From the IMG/VR virus record IMGVR_UViG_3300028558_000016, positions 1 through 64,000 of that record: 64,000 nt of DNA. The stretch is one strand, 5' to 3'. The notes below the pieces were generated by a model that saw only the letters and a list, made by a program, of their open reading frames with translations, had not been told where the DNA came from and did no database searches. This document shows, piece after piece, positions 3,658 through 9,340 of this stretch. The translations under genes were made by a program, and so were the position numbers. How positions within the stretch are numbered: position 1 is the stretch's first letter; each line of letters begins with the position of its first letter.

Positions 3658-4347
3658 TTATGCGTGCAGCTGTCTAATGTTTCCCTTGTACAACTCCTTG
3701 ATGGTTATTTTTCTTCCTGTTACGTGATCAAGAACAAAACCATCCTGTTCTCTGTAAGTTCTTCTCTTGTCGTTTCTGTTTCCATAACCGATTTGATTGA
3801 ACCTCGTCTCTTTCACCTTGGCACCTATCGCACCATCATTAATGTCCTTGAGCCTTTCTTCAAGTCGTGCCCAAGCAGTCTCTTCATTTTTTTCTCTGGT
3901 CCTGTGCTCTTCAACTCTCACTATCATTCCAGTTGGAATATGAGTCAACACGCAAACAGTTTCTACCTTGTTTCGGTTTTGACCGCCGTTACCAGATCCA
4001 CGAGTGTACTTTCGATGCACGTCGTTTCTATTTAAGACAAATTTTGGTTGGGAGTTTTCTTCCATTACAGCTACCGTCACGGTGCTGGTCTGTACTCTTC
4101 CTCTCTTTTCAGTTGGAGGAACTCTTTGCCATCTATGTCCGCCTGATTCGTTCTCAAAGAACTTCCTGACTCCGTTTCCAGTCAGTCATAGCGAGACATA
4201 ACCTGGCATTCAGTGTTCTACTGCAGAAGCAAATTGATTGATGCTTGCGGCCTTTTGATAAATGTCCGCCATTTCATTGACGAGGAGCTTTGCATCTTCT
4301 CCTCCTTCTGCTGCTCGAATTTCGAGCTTGATCTTTTCTGTTTTCAT
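3658..4347 (-). CDS. Short class I peptide chain release factor (RF1/PrfH-like, 229 aa) with two in-frame TGA codons (4210-4212, 4186-4188)
   Basis: Manual translation from ATG 4347: [22 protein letters not shown]...[52 protein letters not shown]...TRGSGNGGQNRNKVET. The RF motifs EIRAxxGG, ESGGHRxQRVP (PxT) and GGQ lie in one frame; the track ORF 3658..4080 is only the 3' part. Confidence 0.85.
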
Positions 4348-5015: not shown

Positions 5016-5271
5016 CTTCTTTTATTGTTAGGTCGATTTCTACTATCTTCCATGTCAAACATTCTTCGAGATTCTCCACAAAAACAGGATGAACCTGATT
5101 ATCTCCTTTTTCTTTTCTCAACCAAACACCTTTGTTCCATTGAGAAACCCACCAGCCTATAGTTCCATCTGGTGCTTTAACTTTAATTTTATTTAAACCG
5201 CCAAATCCTTCAGGAAGATCAGCAATGGTTTTTATCTCCTTGCCTTCAAGAATTATCTTTTTGTTTTTCAT
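5002..5271 (-). CDS. Hypothetical protein
   Basis: 89 aa ORF directly downstream of the last tRNA. Confidence 0.65.
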   Translation of the reverse strand: MKNKKIILEGKEIKTIADLPEGFGGLNKIKVKAPDGTIGWWVSQWNKGVWLRKEKGDNQVHPVFVENLEECLTWKIVEIDLTIKEDEKE

Positions 5272-5297
5272 AAAAGTAAATGTAATAAAAAATTTTG

Positions 5298-5370
5298 AGC
5301 CGATGACAGGGATCGAACCTGCGACCTCCTCTTTACGAAAGAGGCGCTCTACCAGCTGAGCTACATCGGC
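5298..5370 (-). tRNA. tRNA-Thr(CGT)
   Basis: GCCGATG acceptor, GCTC/GAGC D-stem, CCTCT-TTCGTAA-AGAGG anticodon arm, GCAGG-TTCGATC-CCTGT T-arm. Confidence 0.95.
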
Positions 5371-5374
5371 AAAT

Positions 5375-5457
5375 GAAACCGAGCTTTTATTTAGGGACTT
5401 AAGGCAGGTTGCTCTGCTCTGATATTTGCCCAGGAGAATCTTACTCCTATCGGTTTC
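5375..5457 (-). ncRNA. Candidate structured small RNA (element D) in the tRNA array
   Basis: 8-bp closing stem GAAACCGA/TCGGTTTC enclosing the hairpins TAGGAG/CTCCTG and GGCA/TGCC. Confidence 0.4.
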
Positions 5458-5547
5458 TCATGGCTTGTCGTCCTGAAACATTTTGTATACAAGCCAACCC
5501 ATCACAATAACTGCAATGACAATAACTATGTAACAAAATATATCCAT
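5458..5547 (-). CDS. 29-aa single-TM micropeptide
   Basis: Manual translation MDIFCYIVIVIAVIVMGWLVYKMFQDDKP*, lying between RNA genes. Confidence 0.45.
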   Translation of the reverse strand: MDIFCYIVIVIAVIVMGWLVYKMFQDDKP

Positions 5548-5548
5548 G

Positions 5549-5634
5549 TGCAGTAGGTGAGATTCGAACTCACAACCCCCTGATTGGAAGTCAGGTGCTC
5601 TATGCTTTCGCGTCCAATTAGGAGCTACTACTGC
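5549..5634 (-). tRNA. Atypical tRNA with TCC (Gly) anticodon, enlarged D-loop, Lys/Arg-like body
   Basis: GCAGTAG/CTACTGC acceptor with A73, 21-nt D-loop containing GC-GAAA-GC, anticodon arm CCTGA-CTTCCAA-TCAGG. Confidence 0.8.
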
Positions 5635-5660
5635 AAGTGCGAACTTTCCATCGCATTAAT

Positions 5661-5720
5661 TGGAGCAACCTCAGTTAACTGATTCGCATTTCTGCGAGGG
5701 GGGAGTTAACCTCTGGTTGC
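5661..5720 (-). ncRNA. CCA-ended hairpin RNA (element A)
   Basis: GCAACC..GTTAAC..TCGCA-GAAA-TGCGA..GTTAAC..GGTTGC-T-CCA. Confidence 0.6.
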
Positions 5721-5725
5721 GTAAT

Positions 5726-5773
5726 TGGAGCCGAGGGGCCGTTCTCCAACGGTGAGTTCCCTTTCAACTCGGC
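5726..5773 (-). ncRNA. CCA-ended hairpin RNA (element B)
   Basis: GCCGAG..GGG..CCGTT-GGAG-AACGG-CCC-CTCGGC-T-CCA. Confidence 0.6.
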
Positions 5774-5778
5774 ATGTG

Positions 5779-5869
5779 CGGGGAAGATTGGAATCGAACC
5801 AATTAGTTTGATTTGCAGAAGACATTCTTTTTAAACAGAATGGTGCTCAGCCACCCGAGCATCTTCCCC
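5779..5869 (-). tRNA. Aberrant tRNA (Cys GCA-like remnant) with inserted hairpin; possible pseudo-tRNA
   Basis: GGGGAAG/CTTCCCC acceptor, GCTC/GAGC D-stem, ATTGG-TTCGATT-CCAAT T-arm. The central region has a CATTCT/AGAATG hairpin followed by CT-GCA-AA-TCAAA-CTA. Confidence 0.6.
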
Positions 5870-5874
5870 TTTTA

Positions 5875-6057
5875 TTATTTTCTCTTTCTCTCTTCGTCTA
5901 AATATCTATCATGTTCGTCTTTTGAATAGATCTCATAGTAACCACATTTTACTTTGTAATAAAATGGTGACATGTATTTCCATTCCTTGTTAACATCAAT
6001 GAATTTAGATTTTTCTAAAATCTGATTTTCCTCATCCGTCGGTTTGATTGTAATCAT
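5875..6057 (-). CDS. Hypothetical protein
   Basis: Track ORF 5875..6120; the in-frame ATG at 6057 (MITIKPT...) is the likelier start. Confidence 0.5.
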   Translation of the reverse strand: MITIKPTDEENQILEKSKFIDVNKEWKYMSPFYYKVKCGYYEIYSKDEHDRYLDEERKRK

Positions 6058-6195
6058 CGTTTTGTTTTTAGTTATTAAATAGGATGGGAAAACTTTAAGC
6101 GATAGTCTTTCGACAGGCAAGTTATTTTTTCATCGATGATTGATCAAGTCACCTCAAAATAAAATACTTTTCTACACTTCAGCACTTTCCCTCTG

Positions 6196-6268
6196 AGCGG
6201 AAAACGGGGCTCGAACCCGCGACCTTAACCTTGGCAAGGTTACGCTCTACCAACTGAGCTATTTCCGC
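6196..6268 (-). tRNA. tRNA-Gly(GCC)
   Basis: GCGGAAA acceptor, U73, TAACC-TTGCCAA-GGTTA; canonical cloverleaf. Confidence 0.95.
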
Positions 6269-6269
6269 A

Positions 6270-6400
6270 TGGTGCAGTGTAATTAAAAGGGTTGGACTTA
6301 TCTTCCATTCGTCAATGGCTCTTACCAACTTTCGATGTCACGATTAATTTTAAGCGCAAAACGATTCTATTGTCGAATTTTCTATTTGCGCCGACACTGC
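6270..6400 (-). ncRNA. 131-nt multi-stem RNA with 7-bp acceptor-like stem and ACCA end (element C)
   Basis: GCAGTGT/ACACTGC-A-CCA closing; internal stems GCGCAAA/TTTGCGC, AATTAA/TTAATT, GTTGG/CCAAC, CCATT-GACG-AATGG. Confidence 0.6.
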
Positions 6401-6407
6401 ATTTTTG

Positions 6408-6480
6408 AGCGGGAGACGAGGTTCGAACTCGCGACCTATAGCTTGGAAGGCTATCGCTCTACCAACTGAGCTACTCCCGC
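6408..6480 (-). tRNA. tRNA-Gly(TCC)
   Basis: GCGGGAG acceptor, U73, ATAGC-CTTCCAA-GCTAT; canonical. Confidence 0.95.
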
Positions 6481-6518
6481 GTGCGGACATTGTTTCGGGT
6501 ACAACGTCCAAAACCTAA

Positions 6519-6592
6519 TGGGGCCAGGATCGAACTCGCGTCCGACGAATGGAAGCTAATGAGGCCATCCAAACCGCTCATTATCGCCTGGC
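6519..6592 (-). ncRNA. 74-nt CCA-ended tRNA-like RNA lacking canonical arms (element E)
   Basis: GCCAGG/CCTGGC-C-CCA closing, TAATGAG/CTCATTA hairpin, GAGTTCGATC T-loop-like motif without a T-stem. Confidence 0.55.
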
Positions 6593-6645
6593 ATTTGTTG
6601 ATGATACACAACATTATATACCGACTGTATAAAAATGTTTTAATG

Positions 6646-6718
6646 TGACCCCGGTGGGGATCGAACCCACAACCACCTGATTAAGAGTCAGGAGCTCCAC
6701 CAATTGAGCTACAGAGTC
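6646..6718 (-). tRNA. tRNA-Lys(CTT)
   Basis: GACTCTG/CGGGGTC acceptor, CCTGA-CTCTTAA-TCAGG. Confidence 0.95.
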
Positions 6719-6748
6719 ATTTTGTTGATGCAATACGTCAAAGATCGT

Positions 6749-6973
6749 TCATTTCATGAAAAGATGTTTAATTCTTTCCATATCTACTTCAATAGTTTTA
6801 ATGTTCAACTTCTCTCCAGTCTTTTTAAAATGATCATACCAAAGTCTAACCTTTTCAGATTTTATTATCTGACCATTATAATTTTTCCTTTTCAACCATT
6901 CCTTTCCAAAATATAAAATTCGTTTTTCTGTTATTCTCGAATTCATTATATGTTTAAAAACTTTTTCAATCAT
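6749..6973 (-). CDS. Hypothetical protein within the tRNA array
   Basis: 74 aa ORF fitting exactly between two tRNAs. Confidence 0.55.
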   Translation of the reverse strand: MIEKVFKHIMNSRITEKRILYFGKEWLKRKNYNGQIIKSEKVRLWYDHFKKTGEKLNIKTIEVDMERIKHLFMK

Positions 6974-6974
6974 G

Positions 6975-7059
6975 TAGCGCTGGTGAGACTCGAACTCACA
7001 CTACCGTTAAGGAACCCGCTTATGAGGCGGGCACAATTACCACATCTGTTCACAGCGCT
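6975..7059 (-). tRNA. tRNA with CAT anticodon on a class II (long variable arm) scaffold
   Basis: AGCGCTG/CAGCGCT, A73, CCCGC-CTCATAA-GCGGG, 15-nt variable region, GTGAG-TTCGAGT-CTCAC. Confidence 0.85.
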
Positions 7060-7101
7060 ATCTCGTCTGCTTCTTTGTAGGCCCCGTACTATATCTACAA
7101 A

Positions 7102-7371
7102 TCATTTGGTGGGGCTGTCGGAAACAGCAGACTTTACTTTATTTTCTTTCTTATACGTCTTCAAGAATTCCAAAGCATTTTGCAATTCTTCGACCCTGTT
7201 CTTGTTAGAAGGAATGCTTCCATTTGCCTGTCTAACAGTCATCGGATCCGATGACGATAAATTCTTTTCAAAGAACTCTAAATTTCTTTCTTCCATTAAG
7301 AGTCTTTCTCTTAATAATTTTGCCACGTATGGCATCGGATCATATTGTCCTCTTTCTTCTTGTGTCTTCAT
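7102..7371 (-). CDS. Hypothetical protein within the tRNA array
   Basis: 89 aa ORF starting 2 nt after the CCA of the upstream tRNA. Confidence 0.6.
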   Translation of the reverse strand: MKTQEERGQYDPMPYVAKLLRERLLMEERNLEFFEKNLSSSDPMTVRQANGSIPSNKNRVEELQNALEFLKTYKKENKVKSAVSDSPTK

Positions 7372-7372
7372 T

Positions 7373-7464
7373 TGGTGCGCCCGGAGGGATTCGAACCCCC
7401 GTTGGTGTTATTCACACGTCTGATTAAAAGTCAGGACCATTCGGCCAGCTATGGGAACGGACGC
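7373..7464 (-). tRNA. tRNA with TTT (Lys) anticodon and long variable arm
   Basis: GCGTCCG/CGGGCGC-A-CCA, CTGA-CTTTTAA-TCAG, V-arm GTGT-GAATA-ACAC, GGGGG-TTCGAAT-CCCTC. Confidence 0.85.
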
Positions 7465-7478
7465 ATTTGTTTTTATTG

Positions 7479-7552
7479 TGCGCCCGGTTGGGTTCGAACC
7501 AACGACCCCCTGATTAAAAGTCAGGTGCATCTACCAGCTGAGCTACGAGCGC
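7479..7552 (-). tRNA. tRNA-Lys(TTT)
   Basis: GCGCTCG/CGGGCGC, CCTGA-CTTTTAA-TCAGG; canonical. Confidence 0.95.
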
Positions 7553-7774
7553 AAATATTTGGATATGGAAATCCTCTTGCATCTCGTATTTCAGCGAGAT
7601 GCCTTTACCGTTTATATTTCATTTTAGTTTTCATTATCATTATATTTTTTAAAAGAACAGAATACGTTTTTTACCTTTTCATTAAAATTGAAATGCTCGT
7701 TAGAGCTTGTTTGTTTTGCTGTACGTATTCTTTTTTCTTTTTAATTTCTACCACCATTCAGGATGCTTTTGTTT

Positions 7775-7880
7775 TGGCAAAGATTGGATTCGAACCAATG
7801 ACCTCTCGTTTACTTTCCTTAACAATGTTTCCATTGACGGGGATTTCAGGCGAGCGCTCTACCAACTGAGCTACTTATCC
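7775..7880 (-). tRNA. tRNA-Phe(GAA) with a 33-nt insertion after position 37 (intron-like)
   Basis: Standard D- and T-arms. Anticodon arm CTCG-C-CT-GAA-A-[33 nt including CAATG-GAAA-CATTG]-A-A-CGAG; the acceptor stem has two mismatches. Confidence 0.7.
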
Positions 7881-7908
7881 TTTTGTAATGCTGCATGCAT
7901 CCTTTTTG

Positions 7909-7981
7909 AGCCGAGAACCGGGGTCGAACCGGTGACCTTCCGCTTACAAGGCGGGTGCTCTACCAACTGAGCTATCTCGGC
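7909..7981 (-). tRNA. tRNA-Thr(TGT)
   Basis: GCCGAGA/TCTCGGC, CCCGC-CTTGTAA-GCGGA. Confidence 0.95.
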
Positions 7982-7984
7982 AAT

Positions 7985-8119
7985 TTACAAATATTCGTTC
8001 TTGTTACACTCAAAAAACAAAACCCACAACTCGTGAATTCTCTCATTCACTTCATCATTTCCATTTTGTCTCTTGTTTAACAAAGACATCAATTCGTTTA
8101 CTATGTCATCCTTTTTCAT
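7985..8119 (-). CDS. 44-aa hypothetical protein between Thr tRNAs
   Basis: Manual translation MKKDDIVNELMSLLNKRQNGNDEVNERIHELWVLFFECNKNEYL*. Confidence 0.45.
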   Translation of the reverse strand: MKKDDIVNELMSLLNKRQNGNDEVNERIHELWVLFFECNKNEYL

Positions 8120-8122
8120 TTG

Positions 8123-8195
8123 AGCCTACAACCGGGATCGAACCGGTCACCTCATCCTTACCAAGGATGTGTTCTACCAACTGAACTATGTGGGC
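8123..8195 (-). tRNA. tRNA-Thr(GGT)
   Basis: GCCCACA/TGTAGGC, CATCC-TTGGTAA-GGATG. Confidence 0.95.
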
Positions 8196-8317
8196 AATGT
8201 CTCCGATCGTAAAAATAATCTCTCAAATATTATCAAGATCATTTCCATTCTTTATTAAGCGGTCGGACACGCTACTACTAAATCCAAAAGTTGCAACTTC
8301 TGAATTTTTCATCTTTG

Positions 8318-8413
8318 AAGCGGGAGTGAGATTCGAACTCACGTTCTCTTTCGAGTTGAGGCTTATGAGGCCCTGCTGGCGTTTTGCAACTTCCATCTCC
8401 AGTCGATCCCGCA
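8318..8413 (-). tRNA. Initiator-like tRNA(CAT) with expanded D-loop and a V-arm
   Basis: T1:T72 mismatch plus GCGGGA/TCCCGC, D-stem CTGG/CCAG with long loop, GGGC-CTCATAA-GCCT, V-arm CTC-GAAA-GAG. Confidence 0.75.
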
Positions 8414-8419
8414 ATGTGT

Positions 8420-8541
8420 GCCGCTTCCTGGACCCTATCACCAGGATTTTCTTTGGACTACAGAAGAGAGATTCGCCAATTTTTTTCCATAGAATTAAAC
8501 CATATACGGCGCTTTTCTACACTCTCAACTTTCGCAAGCGG
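8420..8541 (-). ncRNA. Candidate structured RNA (element F)
   Basis: Closing CCGCT/AGCGG; internal GAGAG/CTCTC, CGCCG/TGGCG and TCCTGG/CCAGGA stems. Confidence 0.4.
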
Positions 8542-8552
8542 ACTTTTATTTG

Positions 8553-8624
8553 TAGCGGGAGATGGATTCGAACCACCGACCTCAGGGTTATGAGCCCTGC
8601 GAGCTACCCCTGCTCTATCCCGCA
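8553..8624 (-). tRNA. tRNA-fMet(CAT)
   Basis: 1:72 mismatch, three consecutive G-C pairs in the anticodon stem (CAGGG-CTCATAA-CCCTG), A73. Confidence 0.95.
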
Positions 8625-8631
8625 ATATTTA

Positions 8632-8747
8632 TTGGAACGCATACCAACTTCGCAAGAAGTTTCGGGTCAACAGTGACTCTTGTCAAGCTGCCTCCTACAT
8701 GATTGATCAAGCTCCATTCTTTCAGGGAGCACCATGGGCGGTTCCAA
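8632..8747 (-). ncRNA. Candidate structured RNA (element G), first RNA after the attenuator
   Basis: TTGGAAC/GTTCCAA closing; GCTCC/GGAGC, TGAC/GTCA and AACTT/AAGTT hairpins. Confidence 0.45.
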
Positions 8748-8782
8748 TTTTTTAATTTCAATAATTTCTTCAAAGAACAAGA

Positions 8783-8814
8783 CAAAAAAAATCCCAAACG
8801 TTTGGTTTGGGATT
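8783..8814 (-). terminator. Intrinsic terminator of the leader (attenuator)
   Basis: AATCCCAAAC-CAAAC-GTTTGGGATT 10-bp stem running into a U8 tract (the first two U also close the stem). Confidence 0.9.
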
Positions 8815-8837
8815 CGTAATTTCGTTATTAGTTAACG

Positions 8838-8933
8838 TCATTCGCACATCCCAAAACACATAGGCTTACCTTTCCCAGTTTTCGTGGTAGTAGTTGTACC
8901 TGTAGTTATTTTGAATATTTGTTGCGAATTCAT
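8838..8933 (-). CDS. Attenuator leader peptide (31 aa; Thr/Gly/Lys/Met/Cys/Phe-rich)
   Basis: ATG 8933 gives MNSQQIFKITTGTTTTTKTGKGKPMCFGMCE-TGA. It has 8 Thr codons using all four ACN; TTTGGGAT in codons 27-29 is complementary to ATCCCAAA in the terminator 5' arm. Confidence 0.8.
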   Translation of the reverse strand: MNSQQIFKITTGTTTTTKTGKGKPMCFGMCE

Positions 8934-8989
8934 GACGTTTTAATTTGTTATTCTACTCTATATACTTATCTTTGTTTCAATTTCTTTTA

Positions 8990-8997
8990 CAAATGTA
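8990..8997 (-). promoter_or_regulatory. Bacteroidota sigma70-type -7 element upstream of the leader
   Basis: TACATTTG matches TAnnTTTG, about 55 nt upstream of the leader ATG. Confidence 0.65.
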
Positions 8998-9094
8998 GAA
9001 CTTTTTTTAATAGCTTTAAAATAAATTTTTCGATGTGTGATTATTTATTCCATTGAAACTCACGTAATCTATTGAAAACTAATAGAATATAAGC

Positions 9095-9340
9095 TTAAAA
9101 TTTTGTGAATAATTTTATGATTGTATCCTTTGGATTGAATGGTTTTTCGATTGAATTGTAAGAAACGTAACTTACCTTTAAAACTTTTTCATTTTCTTTT
9201 ATGACAACGTTGCCATCAAGATCTGAATAATAAATTGCTTTTTCTGTTTCAACCTTAACACCAGTTAATGGCTCTTTTGTTTTGTTATCTACAAATAGAA
9301 TATTAAAAATCAATGATGAAGCAATAAATAGAATTTTCAT
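9095..9340 (-). CDS. CarboxypepD_reg-like domain protein with signal peptide
   Basis: VDNKTKEPLTGVKV...SDLDGN...VSYVSY pattern typical of Bacteroidota. Confidence 0.6.
   Translation of the reverse strand: MKILFIASSLIFNILFVDNKTKEPLTGVKVETEKAIYYSDLDGNVVIKENEKVLKVSYVSYNSIEKPFNPKDTIIKLFTKF

Follow-up and report, generated by a model that had tools for sequence, protein, structure and literature searches.

A putative leader-peptide attenuator ahead of a tRNA array in a large metagenomic phage

It has long been asked why phages carry transfer RNA (tRNA) genes and when these genes are expressed; phage tRNAs have recently been linked to the escape from tRNA-cleaving defences, in work that treats them as constitutively supplied. 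The locus described here raises the question whether a phage might make its tRNAs on demand. It lies within the first 64 kb of the 482-kb metagenomic phage contig IMGVR_UViG_3300028558_000016, the whole stretch of DNA that was analysed and that is called the window in the following. The locus consists of a short leader open reading frame (ORF), a terminator and the sole tRNA cluster of the window, a minus-strand array that starts at 8624 and ends at 5297. All positions are those of the window, and its features lie on the minus strand unless stated otherwise. A first-pass annotation had proposed that the codons of the leader mirror the anticodons of the array and that the leader thereby senses the depletion of several tRNAs. 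As read from the sequence, the anatomy of the locus, with the ORF placed between a promoter and the array and followed by the terminator, is that of a classical leader-peptide attenuator. We give about even odds (a probability of roughly 0.5) to the reading that the locus is a ribosome-mediated transcription attenuator, one that would control whether transcripts from an early, host-type promoter extend into the tRNA array.

Codon content and conservation of the leader reading frame

The leader ORF (8838..8933) comprises 31 codons followed by TGA. Its codons 6-30 are exactly those listed in the first-pass annotation, and 24 of these 25 fall into the set named there, i.e., codons for Thr, Gly, Lys, Met, Ile (ATA), Phe or Cys; all four Thr codons and both codons each for Lys, Phe and Cys occur. 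Comparison of the leader codon composition with genome usage, which had been suggested as a check, revealed an enrichment far beyond chance in binomial tests as well as against shuffled sequences. The binomial probability was 3e-11 for the 24 of 25 codons of this wider set, and codons for Thr, Gly, Lys and Met alone made up 18 of 30 in the leader compared to 24.2% in 46 long genes of the window (binomial 3e-5). Among the 202 small ORFs of the window, the leader ranked first for enrichment of the set. A central block (codons 8-23, 8865..8912), which we propose to hold the stalling, i.e., the regulatory codons, is composed exclusively of Lys, Ile (ATA), Thr and Gly codons (16/16), whereas the richest of 15,589 16-codon windows from the phage's real genes reached 12 in-set codons. 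Codon choice is biased as well: GGG accounts for 46% of the leader Gly codons versus 0.13% of genome codons, and ATA for 72% of the leader Ile codons versus 35% of Ile codons genome-wide.

A distant BLAST search of the locus among the INPHARED phages returned only generic tRNA matches and no relative, indicating that there is no close relative among deposited phage genomes. Relatives were reached by three routes, a neighbouring protein of 160-200 amino acids, conserved DNA words and a profile of the leader peptide, and were drawn from IMG/VR, JGI, ENA and Logan assemblies. Including the window's own, 14 distinct versions of the leader region were obtained; the 13 further variants carry homologous ORFs of 28-33 codons, all running from ATG to TGA. 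The neighbouring protein of the 14 leader variants shows 40-90% identity, and synteny is constant, with a clamp loader, small ORFs, a UVR-motif protein, the leader, the terminator and the tRNA array following one another. Searches with a 26-mer and a 21-mer of the promoter led to the same three lineages only, and a family-wide pattern search found no new members in viral contigs and none in genome contigs. The four matches to a stop-plus-terminator pattern (L011-L014) were all judged to be due to chance. A further candidate, L004, which emerged from a DNA search with a degenerate peptide motif, was rejected as unrelated, as it represents the C-terminus of a protein and tRNAs are absent nearby; there, the identical ten residues TTTTKTGKGK (10057-10086 of L004, minus strand) end a larger basic protein of an unrelated viral contig.

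The frame from the ATG to the same TGA is kept in all 14 variants despite at least six length changes, all of them multiples of three. In-set codons amount to 47-65% in frame versus 0-35% in the other two frames (13 variants tested), and nucleotide shuffles of the leaders yielded 20-26%. Because the shuffles and the other frames stay low, the enrichment does not originate from base composition. Thr, Lys, Gly, Met or ATA codons occupy 86% of the central block versus 31% of the flanks, the latter being close to background. After the start codon, the commonest residues in 13 pooled versions were Thr (20.6%), Lys (15.4%), Gly (13.4%), Ile (11.8%) and Met (6.2%), and no Ala occurred in any of these 13 peptides. 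Variable positions of the block are filled mostly by Thr, Lys, Gly, Met and Ile, and the codon-position entropies within the block were 0.59 for the first position (mostly A or G) and 0.81 and 0.84 for the second and third. This substitution pattern would fit selection on the tRNAs that are called better than selection on the peptide sequence, with the reservation that it is partly an effect of the genetic code, as ANN codons are mutational neighbours. A GKGK-T-M core and a C-terminal Cys are kept as sequence. When a profile of 13 leader peptides was searched against 1.84 billion proteins, three matches were obtained, all from this leader family; there was no sign of a wider peptide family and no homologue outside this locus in this search.

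Upstream of the leader, a Bacteroidota-type -7 box, TAnnTTTG (8990..8997), predicts a transcription start near 8985 and a 5' untranslated region (UTR) of ~50 nucleotides (nt). It is the only minus-strand copy between 11031 and 3092, no further minus-strand -7 box being present inside the tRNA array, and, as read from the variant sequences, it is found at the same place in 11 of the 14 variants. The start context of the ORF resembles that of the phage's genes, whose starts are A-rich and of which just 6 of 58 are preceded by a Shine-Dalgarno-like motif. Such A-rich gene starts devoid of Shine-Dalgarno sequences point to a Bacteroidota-type host. An internal AAAGG-N7-ATG was considered as the true start and rejected, since the phage makes no use of Shine-Dalgarno sequences and the ATG is replaced by GTG or GTA in two variants; read-through of the TGA was also rejected, since there is no conserved extension beyond it. 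The 5' UTR of the leader contains a 33-nt block (8948..8980) that is more conserved than the leader ORF: 8 of the 14 variants share it without a change, and two more differ from it by one base. On the plus strand (8944-8974), the reverse complement of this block represents a perfect Bacteroidota promoter, TTTG-N19-TAnnTTTG, which faces the leader -7 box, the two starts being a few nt apart. Such face-to-face promoters could compete; no obvious conserved plus-strand gene was found downstream of the plus-strand promoter. In most close variants, the T-tract of the terminator is closely followed by another conserved sequence, GTTCTTTGAA (8762-8771), which looks similar to the leader's own promoter and start region; it might be a processing signal.

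The terminator, its possible alternative pairing and the proposed switch

An intrinsic terminator (8784..8814), made up of a ~10-bp stem and a run of eight T, begins 23 nt past the leader stop codon and is kept in all variants, with one compensatory change from C-G to U-A in L015. The 3' end of the ORF (segment 2, 8834..8857) contains a near-copy of the terminator 3' arm and is predicted to pair either with the start-codon region (segment 1, 8923..8939) or with the terminator 5' arm (segment 3), making it the proposed antiterminator. The minimum free energy fold predicted for the window's leader contains the terminator as well as a helix that joins the regions around the start and stop codons (z = -3.6 to -3.8). 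Complementarity of the ORF 3' end to the terminator 5' arm and its flank was found in every variant, at -10 to -19 kcal/mol versus -9 to -13 kcal/mol for the hairpin, and the duplex of segment 2 with the terminator arm reached p = 0.001-0.07 per variant against dinucleotide shuffles. The lineages arrive at this pairing by different sequences and registers, and in L015 the same position is changed consistently in segment 2, in segment 3 and in the terminator 3' arm (segment 4). Segment 2 lies 3-18 nt before the stop codon, which fits masking by a terminating ribosome. A small hairpin after the stop codon (8823..8837), predicted in 12 of 13 variants, is weak (-0.2 to -3.6 kcal/mol) and barely better than in shuffled sequences. 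In an equilibrium model with the ribosome at the stop codon, the terminator formed with a probability of 0.93-0.97. With the ribosome stalled in the central block, this probability was never higher than with the ribosome at the stop codon (14/14 variants).

Across the variants, the first tRNA starts 11-160 nt past the T-tract, and in seven of them the distance is just 11-40 nt. In these seven versions the tRNAs would be made by read-through of the terminator, because 11-40 nt leaves no room for an independent promoter. In the window, the region between terminator and first tRNA harbours a variable insert (8631..8748) that is bounded by a conserved inverted repeat and that seven relatives lack. 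Inserts of this type, 80-120 nt long and of variable content between the repeats TTGGAAC/GTTCCAA, also occur in L003 (8544-8623), L002 (10180-10276), L025 (2763-2853) and L030 (3879-3956). Rfam gave no match for the insert, for which a structured RNA and a small mobile insert are both conceivable. A cmscan search of 5200-9100 at E up to 5 placed no leader, T-box or riboswitch family on 8780-9000.

In the mechanism that we infer, which includes translation of the leader, stalling, the switch and the cause of the tRNA shortage, RNA polymerase would start at the predicted site near 8985 and a ribosome would load on the leader ORF. With ample charged Thr, Lys, Gly, Met and Ile (ATA) tRNAs, the ribosome would reach the last codons or the TGA and cover segment 2, upon which the terminator hairpin would form and transcription would end ahead of the tRNAs. 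If any of these tRNAs is scarce, the ribosome would stall in the central block of 16-19 codons and leave segment 2 free. Segment 2 may then pair with the emerging terminator 5' arm, and the polymerase would continue into the array. The new phage tRNAs would relieve the stall, thereby closing a negative feedback loop.

The tRNA array and its correspondence to the leader

Eight canonical tRNAs were identified in the window by ARAGORN and Rfam, one with the anticodon CAT, three for Thr with GGT (8122..8195), TGT (7908..7981) and CGT (5297..5370, the last member of the array), two for Lys with TTT (7478..7552) and CTT (6645..6718), and two for Gly with TCC (6407..6480) and GCC (6195..6268). The tRNA-CAT at 8552..8624 is initiator-like, with three G-C pairs in the anticodon stem and a mismatch at 1:72. 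Five array members bear inserts: an atypical tRNA-CAT with an insertion (8317..8413), a tRNA-like gene with ~33 additional nt in the anticodon loop, which leave a GAA or GAT reading ambiguous (7775..7880, 51 bits), a tRNA-Lys(TTT) of 92 nt with an extra arm (7373..7464, 28 bits), an atypical tRNA-CAT of 86 nt (6974..7059, 46.5 bits), and a tRNA-Gly(TCC) with an expanded D-loop of 20 nt (5546..5634, 31.8 bits). The inserts might be introns, decoys or a means of escape from tRNA nucleases. The one in the anticodon loop at 7775-7880 has its own hairpin and appears to be maintained, because it is nearly identical in L003. Attempts to assign the second and third CAT tRNAs to Met or Ile2 were unsuccessful.

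The inventory given in the first-pass annotation could thus be recovered for Thr (GGT/TGT/CGT), Gly (GCC/TCC/TCC), Lys (TTT/TTT/CTT) and three CAT tRNAs, some of them atypical, and had to be abandoned for Phe and Cys. The gene that had been read as Phe-GAA (7775-7880) does not display a 7-nt GAA loop, because the conserved insert interrupts its anticodon loop. A Cys-GCA-like remnant was not identified; the sole remnant of the array (6515-6583) is degenerate and has no readable anticodon. A further gene of 92 nt (5778..5869) is called Asn-GTT by ARAGORN, has a weak Rfam match to tRNA-Sec and carries UUA in an anticodon loop of 8 nt. Its fold, with a 9-bp acceptor stem, a 6-bp D stem with 4-nt loop and a 6-bp anticodon stem below the 8-nt loop, is Sec- or allo-tRNA-like, and on this modelled fold the tRNA could decode ochre or quadruplet codons. 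Stop codons in the window are most often TAA (40 of 58).

Seven downstream arrays in relatives were long enough to be judged. Six of these contain recognisable tRNAs of the CAU, Thr, Lys and Gly families only, together with the same insert-bearing oddities and in a largely conserved order; in L031, the array has the same eleven genes as ARAGORN reports at default settings for L003. In the seventh array, that of L002, the initiator-like first tRNA is shrunk to a minihelix of acceptor and T-arm (10270-10320 of L002), and the next genes are degenerate. Co-variation of leader codons with array content, also suggested as a check, turned out to be uninformative because the arrays barely differ among the relatives. 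The association of leader and array has persisted throughout a clade in which the neighbouring protein is down to ~50% identity. At the level of the CAU, Thr, Lys and Gly families, the codon cluster is cognate to the genes that it would regulate, where the match to ATA assumes a lysidine-modified CAU anticodon. The proposed match between the leader and those tRNAs that the phage can resupply is supported for these families (Thr, Lys, Gly, CAU) and breaks down at the level of single anticodons, as seen in L017 and L018 and in leaders with gaps at AAG and ACG.

Competing explanations and the possible role in tRNA supply

Several observations weigh against an attenuator of this kind. With respect to the array, the leaders of L017 and L018 use GGT, GGC and ACC although their arrays lack GCC or GGT tRNAs, and AAG or ACG is missing from several leaders that precede CTT and CGT tRNAs. 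The leaders do not conserve their Phe and Cys codons, and the initial statement that the array holds no other isotype is contradicted by the 92-nt tRNA-like gene at 5778-5869, be it Asn-GTT or a Sec/allo-like fold with UUA. In L002, the first CAT genes, the Thr genes and Lys-TTT are lost or degraded while leader and terminator are intact, which is mild evidence against a tight coupling of leader and array, or else reflects recent decay. With respect to the RNA, the helix between segments 1 and 2 is not universal, being predicted for 8 of 13 variants and, in part, for one more. Covariation between segments 2 and 3 is weak, its score being reached by 179 of 500 shuffles and its count of double changes by 20 of 500, and RNAalifold recovered only the terminator from 13 variants. 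In the modelled stalled state, the terminator probability falls below 0.5 in four versions and is still ~0.9 in L019, L002, L025 and L017. In addition, GTTCTTTGAA could be a weak second promoter in some variants, the conservation of GKGK-T-M at the sequence level could reflect a function of peptide or RNA, and the occurrence of TTTTKTGKGK in L004 without nearby tRNAs demonstrates that low-complexity strings of Thr, Lys and Gly recur by chance. As to the trigger, anticodon nucleases are suggested solely by the neighbouring RNA-repair genes.

Some of these observations would be expected if the leader were an independent small gene, or a small RNA of dual function, that has a promoter and a terminator to itself and encodes a Thr-, Lys- and Gly-rich peptide with a function of its own. 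The tRNAs would then arise from constant leaky read-through or from unrecognised phage promoters, and the match to the tRNA set would be coincidental or indirect. The sequence-level conservation of the core and the C-terminal Cys, the leader of L002 that outlives its array and the similar string in the unrelated protein tail all suit such a gene, as does a terminator that looks strong and forms in most modelled states at equilibrium. We nevertheless regard it as unlikely: the second codon positions are nearly as variable as the third, substitutions remain within the set served by the array, and the search of 1.84 billion proteins yielded no homologue outside the locus. Moreover, just 0.35% of 30-residue windows of the phage's own proteins have Thr, Lys and Gly as their top three residues, the ORF 3' end is complementary to the terminator arm in every variant, and tRNAs start as close as 11-40 nt past the T-tract. 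An untranslated RNA element, i.e., a protein- or tRNA-binding riboregulator, a signal for tRNA-precursor processing or an insulator, in which the open frame is incidental, appears to be quite improbable. Such an element would account for a 33-nt block in the 5' UTR that is more conserved than the ORF, for predicted helices overlapping parts of the ORF and for the covariation of some RNA pairs, but not for a frame that survived all length changes in 14 of 14 variants with the same TGA, for a strictly frame-specific codon enrichment or for a start context matching that of the phage's genes; Rfam, in addition, has no riboswitch, T-box or leader family at the leader.

It is also conceivable that the locus is an attenuator that reports the general amino-acid or translation status, or late codon demand of the phage, and not the cleavage of tRNAs by host nucleases. 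Thr, Lys, Met and Ile are amino acids of the aspartate family, and the thr leader of Escherichia coli likewise senses Thr and Ile. Codons for Lys, Thr, Gly and Ile are common in this phage generally, and nothing in the sequence identifies the cause of stalling; the shortage could be brought about by anticodon nucleases, by phage codon demand or by starvation. We consider this explanation somewhat unlikely in view of the surroundings of the array, which, to judge from the predicted genes, sits in a neighbourhood of RNA repair and ribosome rescue. In the window, this neighbourhood includes a GGQ RF-1-domain protein of 140 amino acids, aligned with the C-terminal half of RF1 (3658-4080), an RNA ligase of the Rnl1 type (1066-2487) and a weak match to HAD_SAK (497-1039). 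Beside the arrays of relatives, PNKP, PCRF and RF-1 pieces and a 2',5'-RNA-ligase/Acb1-like gene were found (L017 11047-11958; L018 6228-6908 and 8476-8991). More speculatively, the unusual inserts in several array tRNAs could block recognition by nucleases. Repair of PrrC-cut tRNA-Lys by T4 Rnl1 is established (PMC10264068), Lys(UUU) being the only isotype of the array for which we can cite a nuclease precedent. Besides the ligase, the window contains further T4-like core genes, encoding a clamp loader, a portal protein and an SbcC-like nuclease subunit, and nearly all of its long ORFs are located on the minus strand.

The proposed attenuator shares with E. coli thrL (Rfam Thr_leader) and the multivalent ilv leaders a short ORF in which the (here putative) regulatory codons are clustered, thrL being rich in Thr and Ile, followed by an intrinsic terminator; as in these leaders, an ORF-end segment could pair with the terminator 5' arm, a ribosome at the stop codon would mask this segment, and more than one amino acid would be sensed. 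In contrast to these leaders, it precedes tRNA genes instead of biosynthetic enzymes and is located in a phage, includes five codon families, is equipped with a Bacteroidota-type promoter and no Shine-Dalgarno sequence, and has no match to an Rfam leader; its helix between segments 1 and 2, where predicted, encloses the whole ORF. As in pheM of the pheST operon and in T-box riboswitches, a shortage of charged tRNA would raise a component that restores decoding capacity. However, pheM and T-boxes control synthetases and not tRNAs, and a T-box binds the uncharged tRNA directly and has no ORF; no T-box match was obtained at the phage leader. To our knowledge, classical attenuation has so far been known for operons of amino acids and synthetases. 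Like the phages whose tRNAs act in counter-defence, i.e., against PrrC (with T4 Rnl1/Pnk), Retron Ec78 and PARIS, the present phage has tRNAs of its own, including Lys(UUU), next to an Rnl1-type ligase, and PNKP occurs in its relatives. The reports on these three systems describe no sensor that couples tRNA shortage to the expression of tRNA genes (PMC10264068, PMC11555353, PMC11464382).

Full-text literature searches, the coverage of which is incomplete, retrieved neither a case of tRNA genes under leader-peptide attenuation nor a phage tRNA array described as regulated. The mechanism as such is known; the regulated target, tRNA genes, and the setting, a phage, would be new. We tentatively suggest that the locus may represent the first leader-peptide attenuator to gate tRNA genes, a closed-loop tRNA homeostat of a phage that would plausibly be a conditional answer to tRNA-cleaving defences. 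The part from promoter to terminator spans ~200 nt and could indicate, in hosts of the Bacteroidota type, how available five tRNA families are. If the attenuator operates as proposed, a virus would control its tRNA supply by demand, through a ribosome that reads tRNA availability, and classical attenuation would extend to the tRNA genes themselves.

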